Assembly (NCBI GenBank): GCA_030704615.1
Contig: CM060732.1
Coordinates: forward strand, 18,848,001-18,912,000
DNA: 64,000 nt
Reading direction: 5' to 3'
From: Takakia lepidozioides
Lineage: Eukaryota > Plantae > Bryophyta
Shown here: positions 17,104 to 64,000 of the stretch, in pieces
How the letters are laid out: each line of letters begins with the position of its first letter
How positions within the stretch are numbered: the stretch's first letter is position 1
The notes under the pieces: generated by a model
Databases searched by the model: none
Told to the model about the DNA's origin: nothing
The model's input: only the letters and a program-made list of their open reading frames with translations
Position numbers and translations under genes: made by a program

Positions 17104-20100
17104 TTATACAGGTTTGACTGCTGGTTTGGCTGACACTAAGTTGCCCCCACTTTGCCTCAACAGAAAGTCTCTCATCTCTCGGTACCCCCTCAGCTCCTCT
17201 AAGGCATCAGCTGCTGTTTTTGACCCAGAAAGCCTCATTCCCATTGGAGGGGATCCGACCACAGTTGACTGTGGCGAGCTGAACGTCAATCCAGAACCCA
17301 ATGGGGTGTCCACTGATCGACCCCTGGGAACATTCCAACCAGTGGCTGCAGGCTTAGGTGGGCTGCCTTTCAACTTTCCAGTGCCAGAAGCCCCTGCAAA
17401 TCCTATGAGCCCCCCCTGGCCTCCAGATGCCATAGCACCGGTGATGGGTCTGACTGCTGGTGTTGACAAAGGTGGGTCAAAAAATGTTCCAGGTGGAGCA
17501 CTCATCTGCCGAAGTGGCGGTGCAGACTTAAGGATTCTGACCAATGCTCCAACAGCTGCGTCTTGGAAGCGCGGGTGACCCACCACAGCCCCTGGCTGGC
17601 CTATGGGGTCCAATGCATCAGGAGCCTTTGGCCTTGAGCCTGGGCTCTCAATCCTGTCAACAACCAACAAACCGCATATTTGGACAACTTGGAAAACTTG
17701 AGATTGCTGTATGAATCCAGAGAAACTTTCAATTTACAACAACAGGTGACTTAATCTCACATTGTGGGTTTTAAAAGGTTCCATCACCAGACAAACTCTG
17801 AATCCACGACTGAATGCCTTTAATAATAGTTGTCAGGAGATGGAGGGATCACCTGCTGCGATATTCCTCTTCCTCGTCATCAACAGCAAATGGGCAAGCA
17901 AACTCTTCCTCGTCATCAGTGTCCTCATGGCTCTGGCTGCCGGTCTTGGAAATGGCTCTCAAACCCCCAAGTACAAGGCGTGGAGGACCGTACAATGACC
18001 TCTTCACCCCAGAAGGAGGTCCCTCATCCCCCTTCTCATTTCCAACCACCTATACCCCAACAGAATGAGCAAATTATAGACTGAGGAATGCATGCTGAGG
18101 TTGCTAAGGTTCAGAGGGTGAAGGTTGGAAACCTCTTTGTTGAAAGACAACTAACTAAAGCCTCACACACAGAGTACTAGGGTAGGATATGTTCATTTTT
18201 GAAAATGACGATTGGGAGACTACCTTAAATTATAATATAGAGTGATTCCGGTGACTGGATAAATTCATCTCATGAACCGCAATTTAGTTATGATCTGATT
18301 TTTGGATTTCCCACATAGGAAAATTTGGACCCCCAACACGTTTACTCTGGGGTGCATTTCCTGCTGCACCTGATGGAGGAGCTTCTCTGCATGGAATACC
18401 ATTCTAACCTTATGGCTGAAGAGGTTCCCACCATTTTACAAGTTCAAGGAATTACTAGACCATCGTGTAGATGACATCCATCTCTTGAGGGAATGTTTTA
18501 TCATGCACTATATCCTTGCACTTGTTGAAACTTGATTCAGGTCTGTAGCTAAATTGCAATCATACCCTGACTTGGGAAAGTCCTGCCGAAAAAGCATTTG
18601 AGTTGCAGTGTCTTGACGCACTGTAGGCAGCTGGAGTTTGGTCAGATGACACCCTGCTATGTTCCAAATTGCCCAGGCTATGAAAAGAATAACACAAGGG
18701 TGGTGCAGACCTGATGGGCGTGAAATGGGTGCGGAGGAGACATGTGCAGTGAAGACTCAGCCAGCATGGAGATGGAGAGCCGAGCCGCAACCTTGCCATC
18801 CGATGACAAGTTAGATCCCTGACCAGACCCAGGCCGTGAATTGCAAGGAGCTGCTTGTGGCAACATCTCCAGATATCGGCTCGGAGGAGTTGGGGGGGGG
18901 AGCGGTTTCCGGCTTTGAAGAGCCTCTGACGTAAGTATGCGGGGGCTGGCCCCGGCACTTGGGTGAACATTGGAAGGACGTGGAATACTGACAGGGGCAC
19001 TGCTACCGCGGATGCGACTGTCTTGCTGTGCATGTGAAGGGGTGGGGGGAGAAGGCGAGGGAGAGGGGGAGAAGGGTGGCGATCGTCGGCGCTCATGAAT
19101 AGTAATGGGTTGAGATGCATTCCCAGTCTGATGGAAGGAAGAAGGTTGATGAGATGAGAAGTTGCGAGTGACAGGGGAGTTCCGGGGAGAGAGATTTGAA
19201 GGGGCATGTGCAGATGGAGAAGAAGGATGGTGGAAGGAGAGAGGGGGTTTGGGAGGCGAAGAGTGGAAATCTGAGGGCTGTGAGGGAGAGGGGGATGCAG
19301 ATCGAAAGAAAGGAGAGGACCGGGGGATTGAAGGTGGTGCCTGTACCTTGTTCCCGCCCCCACTCCAGCTATGGCGGCGTCCAAAACCAGCTGATGGAGA
19401 ACTTGGTACTGATCCTGGTAGTGAAACCACATGGACCCCCCTCCTTCCAGAAATGCCCCCACTAGGCATGGAGCCCACACTTGAGAAGCGCCGCAGCGGA
19501 TCTGTGGTGGGGCTTCCCACATAATCAGAGATGATGCGAGGAAGAATAGGGGGCATTACTTCGAGTGCGGTCACCGCTGTTGTGTTCCTATATGCCACTG
19601 AAATGCACAATCTACCCCACAGAGTCTCAACAGGTGTCAGGTCGCAGGTCATCATTGCAGCTTTCTCGGCATCAGTGAGAGGGGTTGGGGTAGCTGAAAC
19701 TGCATAGGAAAGAGAGAAGCTCCGGCTATGGGAAGATGAGTTGGCAAGCCTGAAGAGCCGATGTGCTGGCAGGGTGCGCACTGTGCAGTACAGAGAACGC
19801 AGCATGATCACTGTTCTCTTATACACCACGGGCCTTTCCACCACATGCGTAGGGGGAACAGGCATTGGAGGGCCCCCTCCTGCTTTTCCACCTCCCCCTG
19901 AAACAATCCCAGGGCTTCCACCTTGCCAGCCCCCTGCAATTGGAAAACCCCCTTCTGGCATCCCACTGGCTCCCTTTCCATGCCCCGAGCCACTCCTTCC
20001 AAATCCTTCTTTGGCACTCCCCAACCCTAACCCTCCACTGCTGGACCTCTTCCGCCGTTCGTACTGAAGCACCCATCTCTCCAGCAGTGTGCGCGAGACC

Positions 20101-20546
20101 CCTCCCTGTAAGGAAGAGCTCTCTGCGTCGTGGCCACTCCACGATCCACCACTGAAAGTGGCACCCCTCGAAGGAGAGCTTCCTTTCATAATTCGTTGCC
20201 CGGCTGCTCCTGAGAATGAAGGGGCCTCAACACCTCCACCCATTGGCTGCTGCAGCAGAACGTCCACCACCATCGGCTCTTGCACGACTCCCCTCCGCCA
20301 TGGATCCACACTCTCTTGGACTGCGCTGCAGTTATCCATCTCCAAATTAAACCAACGGTTGGTCGGACGGGACCCTGACGGCGATGCTGAGAGGGGTGGC
20401 GTGTCATCACTACCACAGCTTTGGCTTTGTGTCGATATGAAGGGGATGCGCGACTCAAGAATAATGTGCGAGCTTTTGGCAAAAAATTCGGAGACAATCT
20501 GGTCAATTTTGACCCTCTCAGTCTGCATTGTCGCAAAGGATGCCAT
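17104..20546 (-). CDS. ATG13: Autophagy-related protein 13 (HORMA domain plus Ser/Pro-rich disordered region)
   Basis: HORMA motifs IVSEFFAKSSHIILESRIP, RWFNLE, LLERWVLQYE, VYKRTVIMLRSLY..RTLPAHRLFR and IISDYVGSPTTDPLRRF. C-terminal plant motifs FACPFAVDD, DAAVGALVRILKSAPPLRQ and KTAADALEELRGYREMRDFLL. Exons: 20546-18792 (or 18711), a possible extra exon ~18710-18566, 18049-17853, 17653-17104. Confidence 0.93.
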
Positions 20547-27600: not shown

Positions 27601-30600
27601 CCCTTTGTATGCCCCACCTCTTTGACTGCATGCTTGGCAACACCCAGCTTCTCCAGATCTTTTCTAGTCTTCTCACCACACAAAAGGTAAGTTTCTGTAG
27701 TGCGTCTATTTCCTTAGGTTGACATGTCTTTTGCAACTAGAGGGCCAAAGTGATTCAGTGCTTTAGTGGAACCTTATGTTTCAGTATGATGTCAATGCAC
27801 CGTTATGAACACTCAATTGTAACAAATTATGGTCGGCTTCGTGCGAGCATTCTGTTAATTTTTGCTGAGTTTCATATACCCTAGTGGACTGACACCCCAC
27901 TGAGACACTCTGGGAAGGGTTGTATCCTGCTGGAACTGTCCTCAAGACAACATATTAAGGGAATGGTCGGTGTGCATTGTATGTATGTACATATGTGGAA
28001 GATGCTGAAGTTGAGTACGCAGATTTGAGATAAATTGAGGCCCAGGTAAGTTATGGAATTGGTGTCCTACAACTTATCATTTCATGTGCCTTTTAGCTGG
28101 TGCAGGTGACACGGCATTTTGCGGATGTTCTGGTGAACTATTTAGTTACAAGCAAACTGGAAACTCTAAAGCAGCCAGATTCACCGGCAGCAAAGTTGGT
28201 GTTGCAGCTTTTCCGGTACCTTTTTGTGGCAGTGACAAAGTTTTCAGCAGACTGTGAACGGGTTCTACAACCACATGTGACAACATTGATGGAAACTTGT
28301 ATGAAGAATGCAGTTGAGGTGGATAAGCCACTGGGGTACATGCAACTCTTGCGTACCATGTTCCGGGCACTTAATGGTGGAAAATTCGAGCTCCTCTTCA
28401 GGGAATTCATACCGACCCTGCAGCCGTGCCTGAACGTGCTACTGGGTATGGTGGAAGGCCCCACGGGCCTTGACATGATAGACCTGGTGGTTGAGCTGTG
28501 TCTTACTCTACCTGCCCGATTAAGTTCCCTTCTCCCACATCTGCATCGTTTGATGAAGCCGCTTGTGCTGGCACTGAAAGGGAGCGATGAGCTCGTGGGG
28601 CTAGGCCTGCGGACTCTTGAGTTTTGGATTGACAGTCTGAATCCTGAGTTTCTGGAGCCTAGCATGGCAACCGTAATGTCGGATCTGATACTGACCCTAT
28701 GGTCGCACCTTCGGCCAAAGCCTTACCCCTGGGGTGCCAAAGCTCTGCAGTTGCTTGGGAAACTAGGAGGCCGGAACCGACGGTTTTTGAAGGAACCACT
28801 AGGGTTGGAGTGCAAAGAAAATCCTGAGCACGGACTACGTCTCATTTTGACATTTGAGCCAACTACATCATTTCTTGTGCCATTGGATAGGTGTATCTAT
28901 CTGGCCCGGGCAGCTGTCATGGGGTCACAGCCAGGGGTTGATACTTTCTACCGCAAACATGCACTAAAGTTTCTGCGTGTATGTTTGGCCTCGGTGCTCA
29001 ACTTGAAGGGAAATATTGGGGGGGAGGGTGTCACACCAGGGCAGCTCAGCACAATGTTCATCACATCAGTCGATCCTTCAAGGCGGAGGGCAGAGACATC
29101 TAACATGAAGGTGCATAGCAGTCTACATGATGTCCACGAGAGGAAGGGTAAATAGACAGAAGAAAGAAAGAAAGAAAGAAATTTAATGACATCTACAGGG
29201 TGCACGAGGATCATGGCACAAGGTAGAACAAACCAAAGAAAGAAGAAAATGTTATCTAACAGCGGGCCTAAGGGACGAAGAAAGAAAGTTTTGACACATT
29301 GGGAGAGGGGGAGAGAGAATGTACCCATCCAGCTGTGCTTGCTGTGGGGTATCCTCTGTGCTGCTTTGACCAGATAAGTTGAGAAAAAAGGGGTAGGAGA
29401 TTAGGGCGGGATGGTATACATTTTGGGTTGTGAGAAGAAATGAAGAAAGAAGAAGAGCAGTAGGTATATGCATGGTATCAAGGTGTGGTCTGGTTACATT
29501 CATGTGTATCAATGTGAGGTTGCTGAACTTTGACAGGTTGACTTGGGAGTGAAGACCAAGACTCAGCTAATGGCAGAGCGAAGCGTGTTCAAAGTGCTTC
29601 TCATGACGGTCATTGCAGCAAGTGTAGAGAGTGAGCTGCAAGAACCCAAGGATGATTTTGTTTTGAATGTGTGCCGCCACTTTGCAATGATTTTTCATGT
29701 GGATTCCGCCTCCAGTAATCCGACGGGACAATCTGGACAGCTCAGTGCGGTGGGAGGTTCCGGGGGCACAACTGGAGGATTGAATGCCAAGGCTCGCAAT
29801 AATCGTTCCCAGGCAAATTTGAAAGAGCTTGACCCTCTTATCTTCTTGGATGCCCTAGTGGCGGTCTTAGCTGATGAGAATCGAGCTCATGCAAAAGCGG
29901 CTTTGAATGGGCTCAATGTATTTGCAGAAACTCTACTTCTTCTTGCACGCTCCAAGCATACAGGGATCCTAACTCCCCGTGGGGTTAGCACACCAGGAAC
30001 ACCCATGATGGTGTCGAGCCCATCAATGAACCCAGTGTATTCCCCTCCTCCAGGAGTTAGGGTCCCAGTCTTTGAACAACTTCTTCCACGACTTTTGCAC
30101 TGCTGCTATGGTAGCACCTGGCAGGCCCAGATGGGAGGTGTCATGGGGCTTGGAGCATTGGTTGGCAAGGCCACGGTTGACACTCTCTGTCAATTTCAGG
30201 TATATTTGTATAGGGACAATTATTGCTGGATGTTTTGTTTGCACTGTTATGAACAAAGTACTTCATGTGTAAGAATTGAACTTTATTTACTTGTCGGGGC
30301 AATAGGAACTACAATTTTTCTGAGTGGGATATTTGATTCCATTTGGGAAACATGGAAGTGGTAGTTTTGCAGCTGTCTCCGCTTCATTGTTCCATATATG
30401 CTGTATATATAACACCGGGTGTTTGGAGTCATACTTTCCTGTACAGAACTAACTGAAAGTCCCCTTAAGCACCTTGGCCCAAATTGAGGAAGGGAGCAGC
30501 ACTGGGCAAGGGCCATCCAAGAAATACCTCCCCTACATTTCAAGTTGGTAATTGTTGTGATTCCTGTGCAACAATAGCGGGCATATTTTGGCCATGGAAA

Positions 30601-33600
30601 TATATTCAATAATTCTCGCAGCGGGTGAGGTAAGCCTAGAGCTGGGAGAAGGGAAGGCACAATGTAGTGAATCTGTTATTCTACTCCAGGTACGGGCAGT
30701 GCGGGCGCTGGTGTATGTTCTAAAGCGATTGCCACCACATGCCAACAAAGAGCAGGAGGAGGCAAGTCAAGTCTTGACTCAAGTTCTACGTGTTGTCAAC
30801 AATGTGGATGAGAGCAATAATGAGCCAAGGAGGCAGAGCTTTCAGGGGGTGGTTGATGTGCTAGCAGCTGAACTATTCAACCCAAATGCGACGTACATTG
30901 TCCGTAAAAATGTGCAATCATGCCTGGCCCTGCTGGCAAGCCGCACAGGTAGTGAGGTATCAGAGCTGCTGGAGCCCCTCTACCAACCATTGTTAGTGCC
31001 TTTGGTGGGTCGACCTCTCAGAAGCAAGCATGCTGAACAGCAGGTGGGTTGATTTTTAGGGGCTACGCATTTGGAATATACAAAGTTGGACTAGGTAATG
31101 AAGCAATTCACACATGCCACCTCTTTGGTAGTTAGCCATGGTTTTATATTTGATAGGACCTTCGTAACTGGGAGGATCCTGGATCCTGGACACTTGTCAA
31201 CTGTGCTGTCTTTTCTTGTTGGTTACTTTCACTTGTTCTGACGTCTCGCTTTATATTGGTTGATAGGTTGGTGCAGTGATGGCACTCAACTTCTGCCTTG
31301 CATTACGACCACCGCTCTTGAAAATGACACCCGAGCTTATTAGCATTCTACAGGAGGCGCTTCAGATTGCTGAGGCTGATGAAACGGTGCTCAATGGCAA
31401 GTTTATGAATCCCAAGATGGCAGCTACATTAACAAAGCTGCGAACTGTTTGCATTGAGCTTCTGTGTACAGCTATGGCATGGGCTGATTTCAAGACCCAA
31501 AGTCATGCAGACTTGAGGTCACGTATTATTGCCATGTTCTTCAAGTCTCTTACTTGCCGTACCCCTGAAATTGTTGCTGTTGCAAAGGAGGGCCTCCGAC
31601 AGGTTTGTTCAGTGCCTTGTGAAGCAAATATGCAATGCCACTTATCCCTTCATGCAATTAAATAGAGTGGAACTTTCCCGGACACATTGAATGCCAGCAG
31701 AGATGGTCGCCCATCATACGGCTCTCCAATTTGACCATTGTTTGGATTTCAATTCGTTGCCCTAGCTGGTGTCACTTGCTGGCTTATATTTTGATCTTCA
31801 GTTCTTTTTCTGGTTGTAATTATAGAGTGGGTTTTTGAGACATTCCTATCCTAGAGTTTTGTCTTGCCTACTTGCATCCTCTGCCTTGGGAGGTCTGTAA
31901 TACATTTTTTACGACCTCAGGAGGGTGACAGAAATCCATGCACGGTGCTGCTTGCTGCAGATGCGGCACATCTTATCCCATAGTTTTGTAGAACATACTT
32001 TTAGCAGGATGGGTCACGTGCAGACATTCACAATGTTACTATTATATTTTGTGACGGAGGTTGTGTGTAGTCGGTTAGATACTTCCAATTGGGAAGGATA
32101 CTCATCTTGGAAGTGAAACTTCATGTGTACAGGTCATCCAACAACAGAAGATGCCAAAGGAGCTGCTGCAGAGTAGCCTACGGCCAATCCTGGTGAATCT
32201 GGCACACTACAAAAACTTGACTATGCCGCTATTACAGGGTCTGGCTCGATTGCTTGAGCTTCTCTCTAACTGGTTTAATGTAACCCTGGGCGAGAAGCTC
32301 ATGGAGCACCTCAAGAAATGGTTAGAGCCGGAGAAGCTGGCAGCGCAGCAGAAATCATGGAAGGCTGGGGAAGAGCCTAAGATTGCCGCAGGTAGTGAAG
32401 GAATTCTGCACGCTCTATCTTATACCTATCAATCAACTTGAACAGAAAAAAGACATTGGAGGTTGAGACGACTTCTGATAGCGATAGTAGTAATTTGTCC
32501 TAGGTGAATCTGCAGTTTGGTGTCCAGGAATTTTTTTCCTTTCTTGGGGAGGGGGGGCAGTGGTTCAAGTGGAGCTAAGAAGATATGTGGGAGTGTTGCA
32601 GCCATCATAGAACTGTTCCATTTACTACCGGCAGCAGCAGGCAAGTTCCTGGATCAGCTGGTGGGGCTGACAATGCAGCTGGAAGCAGCCCTCCCTGCTG
32701 GCCAGGTTTACAGTGAGCTTAACAGCCCATATTGTCTCCCACTCACCAAGTTTCTCAACCGCTATGCCACTGAGGCCGTGGATTACTTCCTTGCTCGTCT
32801 CACCCAGCCAAGCTATTTTCGCAGGTATGGCTTCTGCTGTTGTCTTTTGCTTCAGTCTTGAACCTAGACAGGAGAGTTCTTTCTTGAGCGACTAATGTCA
32901 AAGAGTGTTTAGTATTGAAAGGTTTTGATCTGATCTTTTGTAGATATGAGGCCATTGCTATCATCATCAGCTGTGCACTGTTGGTGATCCCACTTGCGGT
33001 TTACATCATAAGCAAATGTTCTTGAAGGTCACAGCATGGTCAGAAAACGAGTGATTGCTTTCATCCAGTTCTAGATGATCTGAATTGAACCAATGGGTTC
33101 CCTTTCTGTTGGAGTGTGCCCCTAAGTTCCAACCAGAAATGAAATGAAATGAAATGGTGCTTTATAACGTCCGCGGAAAGCTCGTAGAGCTTATGGGACA
33201 AAATGGAAGAAAACATGAGAGAGGAACAAATCCAGAAACCACAATTAATGTTCTAGCGATTGTCTAAGGGTGAAGGCCTCGTGTAGGTAGGCTGCCAAGC
33301 ATTTTTGATCCTCATAGTGAAAGACATCAGTGAGAGTTTGGGTTCCACTGAATAAACAGTGGAATCTCCCACGGATCTCGTAGTATAGAGGGCAGAGAAA
33401 GAACATCATTTCAATATTTGTTAGGTACGGGGCTGGCCGCACCTGCCAGTTAGTGAAACTGCATTTGCCAGCTATTATAAAATGATAGGGTACCAGCAGT
33501 CATAGGTCAGTTAAGATTGAATTGGCTTGTCCTCTAAGATTGACCATCCAAGATAAAGTCATAGTTGTTCTCGCTTTTGTTTTGAGTTGTTTAACATTTT

Positions 33601-36600
33601 TCAAAAGCTCTATTGTTTCTTCTTTCAAAGAGCATCTGTTGTTACCTTGGATGTGGTCCATCTTTCTATGGATCGGTTGCTATGAAAATGTAATTCTGGA
33701 GTTTCCATCGGCTTACATATGTCCTGGCCCTGACCATGCTATAACAGGGCCCAGAGGGTATAGTACTTGTCAGAATGTTTCGGATGATGGGACGAGGCTT
33801 TTTGTTGACTGAAATGTCTTCACATTTTCACCAATAGTGAGTCACAGCACTGATTATGCCTGATGAAGTGCTATGCCAGATGAATGGATTCTGATTTGTG
33901 CTTCATTGAAATTAAGGTCTTAAGTTTGTCCCAAACTTGTCTCCTAGAAAAGGGTTGTTTCCAATTGAAGGTCAGTTAGTAATGGACTTCAAATCCAAGC
34001 TTATGAAGAACAATGTGCCATCCTCTTTTCTGGTTCCCTCAAACTATTCTTAATAGAGGATCTCGATTGGTTCATATCTCTGCCTTAACCAGGTCAAGTC
34101 CACCCTGCTACTGGCTTTTGCAGCAAGACATCTCTGGCAGTTTCCATGACAGTTCCTGGTTAGTATGAATTTTGAGCAGTGGCACTGAATTTGGTTAGTG
34201 TTGGAATGTCAACAAAATTGAAGTGCAGAAGTTCTTTGGATTCATGGCAGGTTGATGGATATCATTCGATCTGAAGCGGGTCAGCCACTGCGTGAGGAAC
34301 TGTCTCGCTCAGCTAACAAGATTATTGCATGTGCATTTCCACTGCCACAAACTTCGGATGACCCCTCTGCAGTGATCGGACTTCCAGGGGCCTCTGGTGG
34401 GGCTGAAGGTGGCTACATGGGGATGAATGCTGGGGGTTCAAGCCCTATGCAGACATCAGAGGTGCAGTTTCAAGGCATAGCGCTTGTGTCAAGATTGGTG
34501 AAACTTTTGCCTGACTGGTTGCATCAAAATCGGCCAGTCTTTGACGCGCTGGTGTGGTTATGGAAGTCCCCTTCTCGGCAGGCCCGTCTCCGTAATGAGC
34601 AGGGCCTTAGTTTGAGCCAGGTAGTTCCTTCTGTTCCTCGGTGTTGCTTGTTTCGATTCGATGTGTTTTATGAATGGGACTGATAACAAGCCTTGTTGGG
34701 GTCAGCAGGTGAAGGAAAGCAAGCGGCTGGTAAAGTGCTTTTTGAACTACTTGAGGCATGACAAGAACGAGGTTTCTGTTTTGTTTGAGATGCTGTCCAT
34801 CTTCTTGTTGCGGACACGTATTGACTACACCTTTCTGAAGGCGTTTTTCATGGTTGAGGTTGGTCCCTACCGTTCGACCCTGATTGCGTATTGGTTCCAG
34901 CAGTGTTAGCTACCTTATAAATGAATTTTTCTGTGCCACTCACCGTTGATGGTGCTTCCAAGGTGACTCACCAGTCACAACGGCAAATCAGCTGAGGTTG
35001 TGAGCAGGACACTGGGGACTGACATGAGATTGTAGAATGGAGCAGGATTTAAATTTTCAAAAGAAGTGAATACTTCCTTTGGAAGCTGAAATTGGATTTC
35101 CACTTAGATCGTCCCACCCAAACCAAAAGTTAGAAGTTCTGATTGTATTTGTAAGTTCCTGCCTGGGGAGTGAGTGCCTCATTCAGGTATGTTGCGCAAC
35201 ATGTTAGGTCCTCATGAATTAAGGCCTCTGATAGCGATGAGCTGTCTCGAAAAAGACAAAAGCATCCCCCTCTGATCTCAATAGGGTGTCACATAGGAGA
35301 CTGGAAGTTGCTTCTTGTATAAACGAGGTATTCTATCTACTCGTATTGATCTGTAGACTGCGCACACCAACTTAGATGATCAAGTCCTGGTGAGGGCATG
35401 AGGATTTGATTATCTCTGGTGTCTGTCTGACTGTCTTCGTAGAACTGGAGCTTTGGGTGAGGTGAAAACTAGTCTTCATGATGCTTGCACATATATCTTT
35501 ATTACTCCCATCAGCCTGTTTGTGTCCTGCTGAATGAGAAAGACAATTAAAAATTAAAAATTGAGAACTTTATTATGTGCACAGGGGCCCCAGAGGTTCC
35601 ATGGGAAAGTTAACCTAATGTACATACAAGCTGTTGGTGGACACTTCTAGTATGCTGCATCCCTAATGGGCTCCCGGAAAGTTCTTCATCCGTTTATTGT
35701 CAAGTCACCATCACTGTTTGGGTTTAGGCGGTATTGCATGTTCCTTCTTGGCATTGGTTTCCCAACATTACAACAGGTGCTGGGCTTGCAAATTCGGAAG
35801 CTGACTAGATGTCAAGATAATTCCAGCCATGAAGCTTGTATGAAGTAAAGGAGAGTATTCATTAATTGAAGAGTCTGTCCAATGAGTTAATGGGACAGAA
35901 ACGTTTTTTTCTGAGAGCTTAACCATTGCTTGTGGCTGATGGCATTGTAGGTGTAAAGAAACACGTAACAAAGATGAGAGAGAAGTTTTACAACATCCAC
36001 ACAGAGAAAGTGGTGATGGATAAGGGTTCTTGTGTAAACAAGCTGGGCAGACATATATAAGTGGTAAGTCCGAAAATTTAAACTGATTTGTAATGCCATT
36101 ATATCGAGGTTGTGGACAGGTTGGGGAGGGGTACACGCCAGTCGAGAAGAAGAATGTGCTGCTGTGCTTTCTGGAGCTCTTTCAGAGCAAAAAGTTGTCC
36201 CAGGACGTGCTGGTTGTGGCCATGCAGATGCTCATTCTACCCATGCTTACTCATGCCTTCCAGCACAACCAGAGCTGGGATGTTGTTGATGCTGGCATCA
36301 TAAAAACCATTGTTGAGAAGCTTCTGGACCCACCTGAGGAGGTATGCTGGATCCCTGCTTGCAATCAGTATTGTTTGCTCTCTTGAGACCTGTGGCCTGC
36401 TTTAGGCCGGGAGTGTGGGCATGGATGCTCCTTTTTTTGCATCAATTTGGTTTGTACAGTATATATGGGTGATGATGTGTGTACTTCATGGCCTAAATCT
36501 GCCCTTAACCCCATTTTTTTGGCATGATTTTTCGCACTGGTTTCTGCTCCTGTGATCCTTTCTTCTTATCTTTCCTCCTCCTTCCCTTCTTGGTCCATGC

Positions 36601-39600
36601 AAACAGTGCAGACTATCTATGGTACCCAGCTAAGGCAGTACTTTTCCTCATGCAGAAGGAAATGTAGATGAGCAATGTGCATGTTAAGCTGTTTTGAGAT
36701 TGCAATCAAGTCTGATGCCAGTGCCGATTGACCATGCTGCTGTTCTGAGGATGGAAGGTGGATTCGATGCTCAGTACAGTCAGTGAATTCCATTTGAGGA
36801 AATCAAAGTACCCTTCTTAGAACCGGACATACTGTCCTCCTCTTTCAAAATTCTCTTATGTCGTAATTCTGTGGCAGGTGAGCGCCGAATATGATGAGCC
36901 ACTGCGAATCGAGCTCCTCCAACTGGCTACATTGCTGCTCAAGCATTTGCCTAGTGACTTGGTCCACCACCGTAAGGAACTTATCAAGTTTGGCTGGAAC
37001 CATTTGAAGAGGGAGGAAAGTGCCAGTAAGCAGTGGGCATTTGTCAATGTCTGCCATTTTCTGGAAGCCTACCAAGCCCCAGAGAAAATTATTCTGCAGG
37101 TTTGTCACTTCCTTCGTCACCTAGGACGTATTACTTACAACTAGATTCAACCCACACTTCCATTTACACAGGCTAAGTACGAAGTATGGGGAATTATCGG
37201 GGTCGTTTGATGCAAGGCCTTCACAGGTTGTTACTCCTGGAAAGGTTTGGTCATAACCTGAGATAGGAATTTAGATAGACAGACAATTCATTTCCCTAGT
37301 AGAGGGGGTCACAATTCCACTCAATTTCACTCAATGTAGGCCTGTTAAGTTTCTGGTCAAGACCCGATGCTAACCTTCCATTCTGCACATGTGTCAGAGT
37401 CAGCTGATCGCAGGTCCTGTCTTTAAAGAGGAAAACATTGCTGTTGTGATATAGGTGTTTGTTGCACTCCTGCGAACGTGCCAGCCAGAGAATCGTGTGC
37501 TGGTGAAGCAAGCGCTTGATATCCTCATGCCAGCCTTACCCAAACGCCTCCCGTTGGGCGATAACAAGATACCTATCTGGATTCGCTATACTAAAAAGAT
37601 ACTGGTGGAAGAGGGACATTCTGTGCCCAACCTTATCCACATTTTCCAGCTTCTTGTCCGTCACTCCGACCTCTTTTATGCATGCCGAGCCCAATTTGTA
37701 CCCCAAATGGTAAATTCACTGAGCCGTCTTGGGTTGCCACAAAATACCCCTCCCGAAAACCGACGGCTTGCTATTGATCTTGCTGGTTTGGTGGTGGCCT
37801 GGGAGAAGAGGAGGCAAGCTGAAGCAAAAGGGGGTGTCACTGATGGAGACTGTCAGAGTGTCGTGACAGGACCCTTAGAGGCACAGAATCCTGGTAGTGG
37901 TGGAGAAGTCTCCGTAGGTGGAGGAGGAGGTTCAGGGTTGCCAGTTGTGGGGGTGAAGCGCACAGCTGATGCTGCAGGCCTGACAAACATTGGAGAAGAC
38001 CTGAGTAAACGAGTGAAAGCAGAATCTGGTTTGCCAACCCTGGCGGGAATGTCTCCAAATCTGCCAACTGCAGGCAGTGTCCAGATACCCAATATTGGGA
38101 CACCCGGCTCAATTGGCCAGCCTGATGAGGAATTTAAGCCAAATGCAGCAATGGAGGAGATGATTATCAACTTTTTGATTCGCGTAAGCTATTTGATGTG
38201 CCCCCAGTATTGCAGATGATTTGAGTTGACCTAAGACCTGATGAATTCCATGCCAAGTTTTACTGGTAGATCTGAAAGATCGGCGGCTTCATGCATATTT
38301 ATCTCCTCCGTTTGAGAGTGTCCGTGCCAAGTTTCTTCACCTTTTGTTGCAAGTTGCATGAATGAACATTGGTATTGATGAAACTCTGCTGTCTCTCTGA
38401 AGTCTTCAGTCACATGTTTCTCTTTCTTCTTCATTCTGTCTGATTCGCTTCATCTATTCCTCTTCAGGTGGCTTTAGTTACAGAACCAAAGGATAAGGAA
38501 ACAGCGGCGATGTACAAGCAGGCACTGGAACTCCTTACACAAGCATTGGAAGTGTGGCCAAATGCAAACGTAAAGTTCAACTACCTTGAGAAGATTCTGT
38601 CCTCTCTGCAGCCAGCTGGGCAGAATAAGGACCCATCAACAGCCCTTGCACAAGGTCTGGATGTCATGAATAAAGTACTGGAGAAACAACCGCACTTATT
38701 CATTCGCAACAATGTCCAGCAGATGATCCAGGTAAGTTGCCAGTCCCAGTCCAATCAACAAATTAGTGACAGTAATACAATAATACGTGGCAGTGGATTG
38801 ACAAAGTATGCAACATTGCAGGTGCTGGAGCCATCTTTTAACAGCAAACTGCCAGATATTGGTAAGTCGCTTTGCACCTTGCTGAAAATGGTCTTTGAGG
38901 CTTACCCAGTGGATGCAATAAGCACCCACCAGGATGTAAAGGTGCTGCAACAAAAGGTTGAGGAGCTGATTCAAAAGCAATTAGCAGCAGTCACTACTGG
39001 TCAGACACCACCGGTTCTCGAATCTCGGGCTGTGAATGTCATCATAAGTTTCACACTCAACGTTTTGAAGACCCTGACAGAAGGGAACAAGAGCTATGTT
39101 GACCGGTTCATGATGCCTCTCGTCCGTTTAGTGCAGCGTCTTGCCCGCGAGATGGCTACCACATCCACCCAACTTGCACGACAGGTTGGATTTTTTTCTC
39201 TTGTGCATGAATGAACACTGCTTTGTTTGCTCATTGCAAGCTCAAAAGACCACGGAGGATAATACCAAATGGTAGAATCATATCAACTGGTTATCTTGCC
39301 CACTTGCATTCTCGTTTTTGGGAACCTTTTAGAGATGAATTTCACAGTTGTTGGATTGTAATGTGACTGCAGGGGCACAGACTGGAACCAGATGCAACTA
39401 CTCAAACTGCGCGGTTGATGGGTGATCTGGCCTTGATCATATCGAATCAGAAAACACTTTTGAAATTGATAAGTGGACGTGTGCTCGTAATACCAGATTG
39501 CAAGCGTGTCTTTGGTCAGGCATTGCAAACTATACTTGGTGAAAAGGGCACTGACACAGGGGTCCTTCTTGCCATTCTGGACTTAGTGAAGGAGTGGGTG

Positions 39601-59847: not shown

Positions 59848-61778
59848 GTTGTTACGTCATGCCTCCATGAGTTGGACCCTCAGTTCTTGGAATATTCGAG
59901 GTATCGGGTCGGACACTTCTATGCCTAAGCGAAGACATATTCAACGTTGGGCATCTTATCTAGGAAAATTGCGGCATTGGGAAGCGAGTTCCTTTCATCA
60001 CGTTGCAACTTGGCTACTTGGCAGAGTCCAATGTGCATTCACTGTTCCTACTGCTATTTTTTATGTTTGACATGTTTTTTTAAATATTTACCCTTCCAAT
60101 GTCACCTCAGAACGTATTGACCTTTGGTGTCTCATATTACGTTATAAAATTCTCACCTTCCTGCATGATGCACATTGCATTGGGTCTCAGTTGGTGATCT
60201 TAATATGGTTGATAGTTCTTGTGATTGTTTCGGGATGACGGTTCAGTCTCTGTCTACTGAAGAGCAATCGGCTTGGGATTCCCTTTGTTTTACTGTGGGC
60301 TTCTTTGACATCCATGAGCTTGATCGGAACTCTCTTGGGACTCTCTTAGGTATACTTGGTCCAATAATATAGGATAGGATATATGGCACAATTCTTGCGA
60401 AGACTTGGGCGAGAACTTTTCCCCAGTCCCCAATTCTGCTGGACTTCGACCATGCACAAGTCTCCACCATTTTCAAACCTCCCAGGGTTCATGCCAAAGG
60501 ACTAAGTATCTTTAAATTGAACCCTACTCTTCTATGCTCAGCCTTTTTTATCCGCTGGCCAATGTTTGGCCGGCCGCTAGATCCATTGTTCAATCTCCAA
60601 CTTTGAAATTTTTGCAAAAATTAGCAGCGGTCAGAAAAGCTGCCCAATCCATCTCCATGACTAGTGCTGCATTGTAGGAAAGATCTAGGAAAGAGCATAC
60701 CTTGCTCAAATGCATCTCACATTGTCAATGGCTCATTGAAATTAACGTGGTGGGTCCCCAATGACTCGTTGATGACTGGAAAAAAGAACTTGGCAGAGCT
60801 CAATAGTATCAAGGAGCAGTCGCTCAATAGGAAAGCGAGGGTTAATTGGTCTCTCAAAGGAGAGAAAATGACGGCTTATCTATTTCAAAAAGCTAAGCAA
60901 AGACAGACAGCTATGTCTATCTGCTCTCAGCTGCAAAACAAAGAAGGTGTTACGCAGACCAAGCCAAAAATCATGGCTGGCATTACAGCACAATATTTCA
61001 CAAAACTTTTTGGCCGGCCCCGTCCTCACCTTGATTACACCTCCTGTGCTCGTGCTTCTCTCATAGATACAGTTCCCAACATCCTCTATGCTGTTGATCA
61101 AGCTTGACTATCTGCCCCCTTTACCACTCTGAAACTTCTATTGGCAATAAAATCTCTTAGCTTGAACAAATCTCTAGGACCTGGTCTAAACGGCCTATGG
61201 ATAAAGCTGTTTAAAGCCTTATGGCTTCATATTGGATATGCCTTTTTGGCTATATTGGTCAATGATGTCCTAGCCAAAGGAGATCCGTCCCAAATCTCGC
61301 AAGGAGTTATTACCCTCATTCACAAAAAAAGTGACAGAGGGGTCATAACGAATTATTGACCTATCACGTTGTTAAATTTCATCTTATAAAATTATAGCTT
61401 TAAAGGCTCTTGCTCTTTGATTACAGCCCATGTTGGGCAGGCTTATTCGTCATGAGCAGTCAAGCTTTCTCAAAAATTAAATGATTCTGGATAACATCCT
61501 CCTGGCTCATGAAGCATTGTTTCAAGCCCAGGCCTCAAACCAGCCGCTTGCCCTCTTTATATTGGATTTTGAAAAGGCCTTTAACAATGTGGATTGGCCC
61601 TTCCTCTTATGTGTTTTGGAAAAGTCTGGTATCAACGGACATTTTCTTCCATGGATTCAAATTCTGTTGTTTTCTGCTTCCAGCAAAGTCATCGTGAATG
61701 GCGCTCTCTCCTCCTCATTTGCTCTTCACAGATCTGTTTGCAAATCTGTTAGGCAAGGTTGCCTGTTTACCCCTTTCC

Positions 61779-62235
61779 TGTTGGAAAACCACGGGCGTGT
61801 GGTCGGGCTAGGGATTGAACCTAGGACCCCCCCATTCCGGTGGGGTGCTCTACCACTGAGCTACCCGTCCCGTTGTGTTCTCAGAGTGCCGTGCAAGGGC
61901 TATAGCCTTGACACCTCCAACACTCCCCCTCAAGGCATAGCCCTTATGCTAATGCCCACCCATTCTGACCACCGCCCCAACCTTGGCTCTGATACCATGT
62001 AAGATTCAGCATACTGGAATACTTTACTAAGGAGGAACATCAGGAATACAGTACCCTTAACGGGTTCCCTATTTATCTAAGAGCTAGCATTGATTGCCGG
62101 TAGGTGGCACTAAACCCGATTAGCTGGAATTCACCTAATGCTTACCAACTGGATGACTCCTACTTAATAAAGAGATAAAGCAAACAAGGTGTCACCCTGG
62201 TGGGACCAAGCTGATATAGCTTTCTAAATCTAACA
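61779..62235 (-). mobile_element. TRIM-like miniature LTR retroelement with non-identical LTRs (3' LTR tRNA-derived, Helenus-like)
   Basis: TSD TTTCC at 61774-61778 and 62236-62240. 5' LTR 62235-61998 (plus strand TGTAAGA..TCTAACA). PBS TGGTATCAGAGCC at 61997-61985 (tRNA-iMet). PPT TTGAGGGGGAG at 61933-61923. 3' LTR 61922-61779 (TGTTGGA..TCCAACA). Confidence 0.88.
61800..61870 (-). ncRNA. tRNA-like cloverleaf (pseudo-tRNA, Pol III type-2 promoter) inside an LTR
   Basis: GGACGGG TA GCTC AGTGGTA GAGC A CCCCA CCGGAA TGGGG GGGTC CTAGG TTCAATC CCTAG CCCGACC A. Acceptor stem 6/7 bp; D, anticodon and T stems perfect; A and B boxes intact; anticodon loop only 6 nt. Confidence 0.85.
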
Positions 62236-62523
62236 TTTCCTGTTTTTGATTGTTGCGGGCACGCTAGGCCATCTTCTCTTTTCCCCAATGTTTGAAAATC
62301 GCATGGAAGCCTGCACTTGTACATGAGATATAAGCATTCCAAAAAGGTTTGGTCTAATATATTGGCCAAAGTTAGGGACCATAGGAAAAATTGTCTGTCT
62401 TTTTTGTTTCGAAGAGGGGGACAGGCACTCAAAAGACCTCTTGTTCTGTCAGACAGAGCAGCGAGGTCTCTGATCACAGTGATCAGGCATAGTAACTATT
62501 GACTTTCACTATTCAATAAACGT

Positions 62524-64000
62524 TGTTACACTACACATTCATATCTAATCATACATGCAATCACCATTCAACGCTCCTAGATTCCACTCTCGTCTCATTT
62601 TCTGCATATAGTGTCATACAACGTGTTCCTGCTCTGCAATTAAAAATCAATACGCACAGAGAACCATCACACACTATATGTCACAGTACTTTTGGCGGGC
62701 AATTGCATAGTTCAAATCTCACTGTTCCCAAGAACTAGTTCACTGTTCCCAATACTTAATATTCCCACTTAGTGAGATTGAACTATAACATCTACAGGTA
62801 ATCTCCCACTTTCAATTTCACTGATGACAATTTCCCAACACATCTCTGAAACGCTTGAAGGTGTGTACTGGAAGTGCCTTCGTGAATAAATCAGCGATCT
62901 GTGAATTGGTAGGGACATACAGAACTTTGAGCTCCCCTTTCTCCTGATTTTCTCTGATGACATGATATGCAACGTCCACATGTTTTGTCCTCTTAGGATA
63001 TTCAGGATTGTATGCTAGACGTATAGCACTTTGGTTGCCAGAGAACAATAGAGTAGGTTCCTACAGCGAAACTCCAAGACCGTGAAGCAGCCTTCGAGTC
63101 CAAAGAATCTCTTTTGCCGTTACAAAGGCAGCAATATACTCCAACTCTGTGGTGCTACTTGTTGTGCAGACTTGTTTTCTACTGCCCCACACAATAGGGC
63201 CCCCATTGAGTAACAACAAGTAGCCAGATCTGGATTTGCGATCATCGCCAGAATTCTATTTGCCAAGATAGATACGTCCAGAAGATCATTTCAGATTTCA
63301 GACTTGTTGATGCAAATCCAGTCTCCGTGCCAGCTGATCCGGCGAGCCATCTGGTATCTTTTTCCACGAGTACAGATGATGAACCTACAACTTCATTTCC
63401 CTACAAAGAGTTGGTGGGCAGTTTAGCATATCTTGCTATGTGCACGAGACCCGACATTTCATATGCTGTCAATAATGCAGCCAAATATTCTGCCAATCCG
63501 ACACAGATACACTACATGGCTCTGAAGAGAATTTTGAAGTACTTGATTGGCACACCGCACATGGCTATATGCTATGGTCCAACATCACAAATCATGCAGA
63601 TTATGCTAACGATCCGATTTCTAACCAAGTGAAGCCCTACATAGACTTCAGGATCATTCTTGGTGATAGTGAAAGCTTCACCCATGTAATCAAGAACATC
63701 TGTCACCTTCTGTGTTTTGACACTGCAGGCAAGACCATCATCGACAAAGATAGTGAGGATCAAATGTGTGCCTTTGCTGCTAAAATAAACACAAGGATCG
63801 GCGTCACTTGCTGTGAGATCGTATTTAGTCAAGAAAGAGTCGAATTTCTTGTTCCACGCTCGAGAGGCCTGTCGAAGGCCATAGATAGACTTTTTGAGTT
63901 GCTTAGGGGCTGGCGGATCTGTGAAGCCTAAAGGCTGATCCATGAAGATTTCCTCTGCTAAATCTCCATGGAGAAAAGCAGTTTTAACATCAAATTGGGT
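62524..64000 (-). mobile_element. Ty1/Copia fragment: RT, RNase H, PPT and probable 3' LTR (~62761-62524), with an internal inversion at ~63250-63612
   Basis: Minus strand: QFDVKTAFLHGDL.EEIFMDQPLGF, LKKSIYGLRQASRAW, IFVDDGL, NQSAIRLAYNP..RTKHVDV and QIADLFTKAL. The segment PYKELVGSL..TRPDISYAV is on the plus strand. Confidence 0.92.

Follow-up and report, generated by a model that had tools for sequence, protein, structure and literature searches.

A TSD-flanked miniature LTR element with two unrelated LTRs, probably integrated as a chimeric cDNA

We found that a miniature LTR element inserted in a LINE relic carries two LTRs that are unrelated to each other, and that it entered its target as a single unit. 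Its origin is probably a single integrase-mediated integration of a chimeric cDNA, in which strong-stop DNA of one LTR element (B) had been transferred onto the minus strand of a Helenus element through a shared PBS. What is new is the pairing of two unrelated LTRs within one intact TSD; the Helenus half is of a known kind. The insertion measures 457 bp (61779-62235 of the window, that is, of the whole 64-kb stretch of DNA that was analysed), starts with TG and ends with CA. On the minus strand it consists, in this order, of LTR-B (238 bp), an iMet PBS, a 75-bp interior, a PPT and LTR-A (144 bp). When the sequence was re-read, coordinates and anatomy came out as the sequence-only reading of this DNA had given them. 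The features are as follows.

61481 to 61778, plus strand: degenerate LINE RT frame, left of the insertion (RVT_1, E 1.4e-5)
61774 to 61778: left TSD copy, TTTCC (direct sequence reading)
61779 to 61922, minus strand: LTR-A (144 bp), the 3' LTR, Helenus-type, with termini TGTTGGA..TCCAACA (loose ends at both borders; depth; match to Helenus-1_SMo)
61785 to 61788, minus strand: run of four T just past the tRNA-like sequence, in the TTTTCCAACA end (the same 10 nt close the Helenus-1_SMo LTR)
61800 to 61870, minus strand: tRNA-like sequence within LTR-A (Rfam tRNA, 54.9 bits, E 1.4e-10, model positions 1-71)
61895 to 61945, minus strand: hairpin with a 16-bp main stem, in whose loop lie the PPT and the start of LTR-A (-24.6 kcal/mol, z -4.4)
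61923 to 61931, minus strand: PPT, GAGGGGGAG (direct sequence reading)
61923 to 61997, minus strand: Helenus TRIM interior, 75 bp (depth; both ends align to the Helenus-1_SMo interior)
61984 to 61997, minus strand: PBS, TGGTATCAGAGCCA, that is TGGTATCAGAGC(CA), adjoining the CA of LTR-B with no spacer
61998 to 62235, minus strand: LTR-B (238 bp), the 5' LTR, with termini TGTTAGATT/TGTAAGATT (TGTTAGATT..AATCTTACA), without similarity to A or to Helenus-1_SMo
62070 to 62076, minus strand: TATA-like motif ATAAATA in LTR-B, ~80 bp from the end of B
62089 to 62096, minus strand: CAAT box motif in LTR-B, ~100 bp from the end of B
62236 to 62240: right TSD copy, TTTCC (direct sequence reading)
62241 to 62326, plus strand: the same RT frame resumed, (L)FLIVAGTLGHLL.., right of the insertion (collinear with P0121, P0126 and P0129)

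The target was examined on both sides of the insertion. The left RT piece found 6302 RT homologues, and in three of them the two pieces follow each other directly: the left piece ends at residue 147 of P0121, 187 of P0126 and 220 of P0129, the split codon corresponds to residues 148, 188 and 221, and the right piece starts at 149, 189 and 222, respectively. The codon cut by the insertion is C|TG (Leu). Because the pieces are collinear in all three homologues, taking out 457 + 5 bp gives back an RT with neither a missing nor an extra residue. This is one insertion event with a 5-bp duplication into a LINE RT, and the claim that the insertion had entered as one unit is upheld by the perfect TSD together with the restored collinearity. 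The interrupted frame had rightly been assigned to a LINE RT, but its reading across the junction, PF|FLFLIVA, has to be corrected to ..TPF|LFLIVA. The right-hand piece is short (27 aa) and matched nothing in BLASTP or in a Pfam search; in a Smith-Waterman comparison with shuffles its signal was weak (P0121 scored 38, against a shuffle maximum of 35), and the expected position was hit exactly in the three proteins. The contigs bearing the closest LINE RT (P0121; Logan SRR327433 and SRR327455) contain neither A nor B. A repeat tool reported a direct repeat of 9 nt (TTTCCTGTT) at the ends of the insertion, longer than the 5-bp TTTCC, because the target by chance goes on with TGTT; the family border at 61779 is set by about 20 contigs that have unrelated flanks there.

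The two LTRs had been called unrelated, and the comparison of A with B agrees: the longest match is 8 nt, and outside its tRNA-like sequence A does not resemble B. Derivation of A from B by insertion of a SINE was rejected for the latter reason. No further copy of any part of the insertion occurs within the 64-kb window. Like a TRIM, the insertion has a PBS after its 5' LTR, a PPT before its 3' LTR, a 5-bp TSD, no coding capacity and a total length below 1 kb; unlike a TRIM, it lacks two similar terminal direct repeats, the likeness of A and B ending at those 8 nt. The PBS TGGTATCAGAGCCA is presumably of the plant initiator tRNA-Met type, and the only exact copy of the 12-mer TGGTATCAGAGC in the 64 kb is this PBS. 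A separate TSD of LTR-B, as expected of a nested solo LTR, was looked for and is absent, B being flanked by TACCA/TTTCC. LTR-A is flanked by TTTCC/CTCCC and thus has no TSD of its own. No remnant of a 5' LTR-A is left at the locus, and with the flanks of B this led us to reject a solo LTR-B nested in a TRIM. The 73-aa translation of A plus interior gave no candidate in a protein search, and for three ORFs of the window, two of which cross the outer junctions, no record was found.

LTR-A and the interior belong to a kind that the sequence-only reading had not recognised as already published. Helenus, with a tRNA-derived sequence in its LTRs, was described in 2024 and grouped with Cassandra and Ajax as TRIMp3 (Kojima 2024, PMC10886601). 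Its sole plant record at that time was Helenus-1_SMo of Selaginella moellendorffii, with an LTR of 120 bp, an interior of 85 bp and a TSD of 5 bp (PMC10886601); we used the consensus from the supplement of that paper. LTR-A matches the Helenus-1_SMo LTR with 79% over 82 nt (E 9e-15) in the tRNA-like part, a likeness that could in part stem from a common source tRNA. In the interior, 18 of the first 21 nt match, and the PPT matches as well. The two elements share an A/B-box tRNA-like sequence in a short LTR, the LTR end TTTTCCAACA, a PBS directly after the LTR (TGGTATC.GAGC.A.GGTTGG), a G-rich PPT, a 5-bp TSD, a short interior (75 bp here versus 85 bp), a hairpin round the PPT and the start of the LTR, and the outer-end pair TGTTAGA.. 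/ ..TCCAACA. They differ in the length of the LTR (144 bp here versus 120 bp), and no alignment is obtained over the remainder of U3 or in the central part of the interior. Judged by these sequence likenesses, A plus interior is a member, or a close analogue, of the published Helenus / TRIMp3 kind. The difference that matters here is that this copy has the Helenus LTR at its 3' end only and a foreign 5' LTR, whereas the canonical copies in this genome carry it at both ends.

The tRNA-like part of LTR-A has its A box at 61853-61863 and its B box at 61811-61821. Its anticodon loop is degenerate, and ARAGORN gave no assignable anticodon. It is the sole tRNA-like match in the 64-kb window, and LTR-B contains none. 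A tRNA-derived SINE was considered and rejected, since the tRNA-like sequence is enclosed in a TG..CA repeat, no A-rich or simple-repeat tail is present and the TSD is 5 bp. The T run past the tRNA-like part is a possible Pol III terminator or a possible R/U5 border. LTR-A ends at 61783-61790 (minus strand) with GGTTTTCCAACA. If the T run acted as a Pol III terminator, the R/U5 border would fall 6 nt from the LTR end, and readthrough would be needed in the 5' LTR. Contigs over 61779-61997 also join other U5 variants, ..AAAATTTACCATG and ..GATTTCTTTTTTCAACA instead of ..CCGTGGTTTTCCAACA, to the same PBS and interior. Such variants may have been left by former exchanges of LTR or U5. A TRIM subfamily ending in ..TTTTTTCAACA was seen as a loose end at 62000 in contigs. 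At the equivalent place, Helenus-1_SMo has a 13-bp hairpin with other stem letters (z -5.1). Since the hairpin spans the border between interior and A and its architecture is kept in Helenus-1_SMo, interior and A co-evolve; the predicted structure may serve in PPT selection or packaging.

Copy numbers were compared through contigs of five sequencing runs that hold this stretch, four from one sample and one a plant metagenome with a small share of it; all depths are summed contig depths and are valid as orders of magnitude only. In X1, the summed depth was ~57 in the flanks, 420-1670 in B, 13,000-55,000 in the interior and 55,000-147,000 in A. A thus stands at ~1000-2500 times the depth of the flanks, A plus interior at ~1000-fold and B at ~10-fold, and the step at 61998 between the two halves is ~100-fold. 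Both borders of A (61779 and 61922) are marked by many contigs with unrelated flanks. The A-interior-A arrangement was looked for and is present: joints 61998->61781 and 61960->61782 in contigs represent canonical A-interior-A copies. In the plant-metagenome run, which comes from another study, A plus interior is present, and B and the flanks are absent. These joints, the depth that follows A and the conserved hairpin show that the interior goes together with A rather than with B.

B is a separate repeat, ~100-fold rarer, that has the same borders in other copies: records 3, 4 and 5 keep the borders at 61998 and 62235. The depth of 540.6 over 62044-62145 is the exact sum of three contigs, one of depth 423 that differs from this copy at two positions and two single-copy ones that differ at ~10%, which indicates a B family of ~10 copies, several of them young. 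Two diverged copies (records 3 and 4) start at 61998 or 62004, and the next 190-196 letters of their contigs are unlike the interior. In neither of these two listed copies does a PBS match follow, so that they are 3' or solo LTRs, or B elements use another PBS. With its CAAT box and TATA-like motif, LTR-B has the look of a Pol II promoter or LTR. A conserved 22-mer of B had no match in viral contigs, and in metagenome contigs it had a chance match only, in a contig of 65% GC without further similarity.

In the finished DNA of an LTR element, plus-strand strong-stop DNA supplies the 5' LTR, and everything from the PBS through interior and PPT to the 3' LTR stems from the minus strand. The body of the present insertion (PBS, 75-bp interior, PPT hairpin and 3' LTR-A) would accordingly come from the abundant, tRNA-carrying Helenus / TRIMp3 TRIM, and its 5' LTR (B) from an unrelated, low-copy LTR element. 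The proposed course has four steps. RNAs of both elements would have been packaged together in one virus-like particle and both reverse-transcribed there. Plus-strand strong-stop DNA of B, comprising U3-R-U5 and the copied 3' end of the tRNA primer, would then have annealed to the complement of the Helenus PBS, which presupposes the same PBS on B elements. Extension of both strands would have given B-PBS-interior-PPT-A, with the CA of B set directly on TGG. Finally, integrase would have inserted the product through its two TG..CA ends, with the 5-bp duplication as the result.

The inner join fits this course. The CA of B is followed by the PBS with no spacer, as in the LTR/PBS of Helenus-1_SMo, and a seamless join of B and PBS is what a plus-strand transfer mediated by the PBS predicts, which supports the chimera. 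The outer ends are the same pair as in Helenus-1_SMo, so a single integrase may plausibly have served both. A chimeric cDNA had already been proposed by the sequence-only reading, and it is retained as the best reading, at the strength given at the outset, with the single unit, the unrelated LTRs, the pairing of the interior with A and the seamless join in its support. The chimeric product is a replicative dead end: its RNA would differ in R at the two ends, and it therefore cannot reproduce itself. The reciprocal product (A, interior of B, B) was not seen, and the known hetero-LTR copies amount to one specimen. In retroviruses, plus-strand transfer is mostly intramolecular. An intermolecular event at this second transfer would therefore be rare. 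That co-packaged RNAs recombine while being reverse-transcribed is well established. A review traces such recombination to the first strand transfer and to internal template switches, and gives the plus-strand (second) transfer as a move within the same minus-strand template; recombination at plus-strand transfer is not among the sources that it lists. If the chimeric cDNA is real, the locus is a rare natural case of a second strand transfer between molecules.

Considering that the autonomous movers of TRIMs are not known, a chimera formed inside a particle is of interest because it records which RNAs were packaged together. For Cassandra there is no indication of a helper, and no shared LTR sequence serves as a guide (Kojima, PMC10886601). 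If LTR-B proves to come from a coding element that has the same PBS, a candidate helper is identified by this locus. We suggest tentatively that LTR-B is the LTR of an autonomous Copia-type element that packaged and mobilised the Helenus TRIM here, an identification that is possible rather than probable. Should B be a helper's LTR, hetero-LTR chimeras with an intact TSD would be natural fossils of intermolecular strong-stop transfer, and genome searches for such chimeras could pair TRIMs such as Cassandra and Helenus with their helpers. To the right of the LINE relic, pol fragments of Copia type, some in one orientation and some in the other, make up a mosaic at 62330-64000 (..VGSLAYLAMCTRPDISYAVN.. 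on the plus strand, ~63400). No fragment of this mosaic resembles A or B.

A chimeric cDNA could also have been formed between two non-autonomous sister families with the interior in common (A-interior-A and B-interior-B), by a switch in the interior or the PBS, and B would then not be the LTR of a helper. B is short (238 bp), LTR swapping and TRIMs with LTRs from other TRIM families have been reported, and a homology of 75 bp would ease a switch as compared with a PBS of 14-18 nt. However, the two other listed B copies (records 3 and 4) do not run into this interior, and the depth of the interior tracks A, not B. Moreover, a switch in the interior alone cannot yield two different complete LTRs: since the 5' LTR is built from plus-strand strong-stop DNA, a cross-transfer is needed even between sister families. 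We therefore consider this origin unlikely.

An error of assembly, with the inner part mis-joined and a true locus of different structure, has to be weighed mainly at the junction 61997/61998. This junction is spanned by none of the listed contigs, the region is made of repeats, and the runs share one sample, which is perhaps the assembled one. On the other side, short-read contigs from three runs of one sample contain both outer junctions free of mismatches, the one between LINE and the end of A in records 1, 8 and 15 and the one between the start of B and LINE in records 6, 13 and 20. The end of A and the start of B thus lie at one TSD within a single collinear RT frame, so that the insertion has heterologous ends regardless of its inner sequence. 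The inner join is also base-perfect as an LTR border (CA|TGG), and an artefact is quite improbable.

Recombination of LTR elements after integration is common, and an inserted A-interior-A copy might later have had its 5' LTR replaced by B through conversion or ectopic recombination, or the present structure might have been left by nested insertions and deletions. Neither course agrees well with the locus, where no 5' LTR-A is left and B has no TSD of its own. The homology between A and B that would drive conversion is absent, ectopic exchange between loci would break the matching TSD and the collinearity of the RT, and deletions would have to be placed to the exact base at both ends. A change after integration is thus very unlikely to have produced the element.

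The TG..CA ends and the 5-bp TSD would fit a solo LTR of this size as well. That the 457 bp as a whole are such a remnant of a larger element, or one copy of a hetero-LTR family that replicates, is hardly credible in view of the ~100-fold difference in depth between the halves, the A border at 61922 with its diverse flanks, the B copies that end at 61998, and the exact PBS and PPT at their correct places. In canonical replication one set of U3, R and U5 is the source of both LTRs, which come out alike, so that a hetero-LTR family cannot propagate. An undescribed family of that kind had been offered as an alternative to the chimeric cDNA; it was discarded on the copy-number gap and because its structure is not heritable by canonical LTR replication.

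Other recombinant elements resemble the present one in part. Template-switch 'complex' LTR elements arise from two co-packaged RNAs, enter the genome in a single insertion and keep a complete 5-bp TSD (Sabot and Schulman 2007, PMC1950507). The present element resembles them in its single insertion and 5-bp TSD and, if the chimeric cDNA is correct, in its origin from two RNAs. Of their criteria the TSD is the one that is found here: those elements have three LTRs, two interiors, near-identical outer LTRs and close parents, in contrast to two unrelated LTRs and one interior. According to a 2026 survey of sugar beet, two chimeric TRIM-08 copies have LTRs donated by TRIM-01 or TRIM-05 (PMC13570524). 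LTR swapping in soybean is cited in PMC6894440. LTRs and interiors of different families are combined in both plants, as they are here. The TRIM-08 chimeras differ in that they are described with 'additional' LTRs (PMC13570524), and the swapped soybean families have matching LTRs after more replication, whereas here a first-generation hetero-LTR product was kept with its TSD. Such first-generation hybrids are the expected intermediates of LTR swapping, and it is through LTR swapping that non-autonomous elements acquire new LTRs. Cassandra, too, is a miniature LTR element, and its LTR contains a small-RNA module of Pol III type; its module is 5S rRNA-like instead of tRNA-like, and its copies have matching LTRs.

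Two ordinary host genes lie in the same window. The exons of a Tra1/TRRAP-like gene (Pfam Tra1_central and Tra1_ring) extend over 28100-39214 on the plus strand. For an ATG13 gene (18678-20546, minus strand), the nearest matches are proteins of liverworts and mosses (56-62%), and the protein of Selaginella moellendorffii reaches 49%. The DNA thus seems, by one gene, to be that of a bryophyte-like plant, and a Helenus-type TRIM at ~1000-fold the depth of the flanks would extend this kind of element beyond its single plant record, Selaginella.
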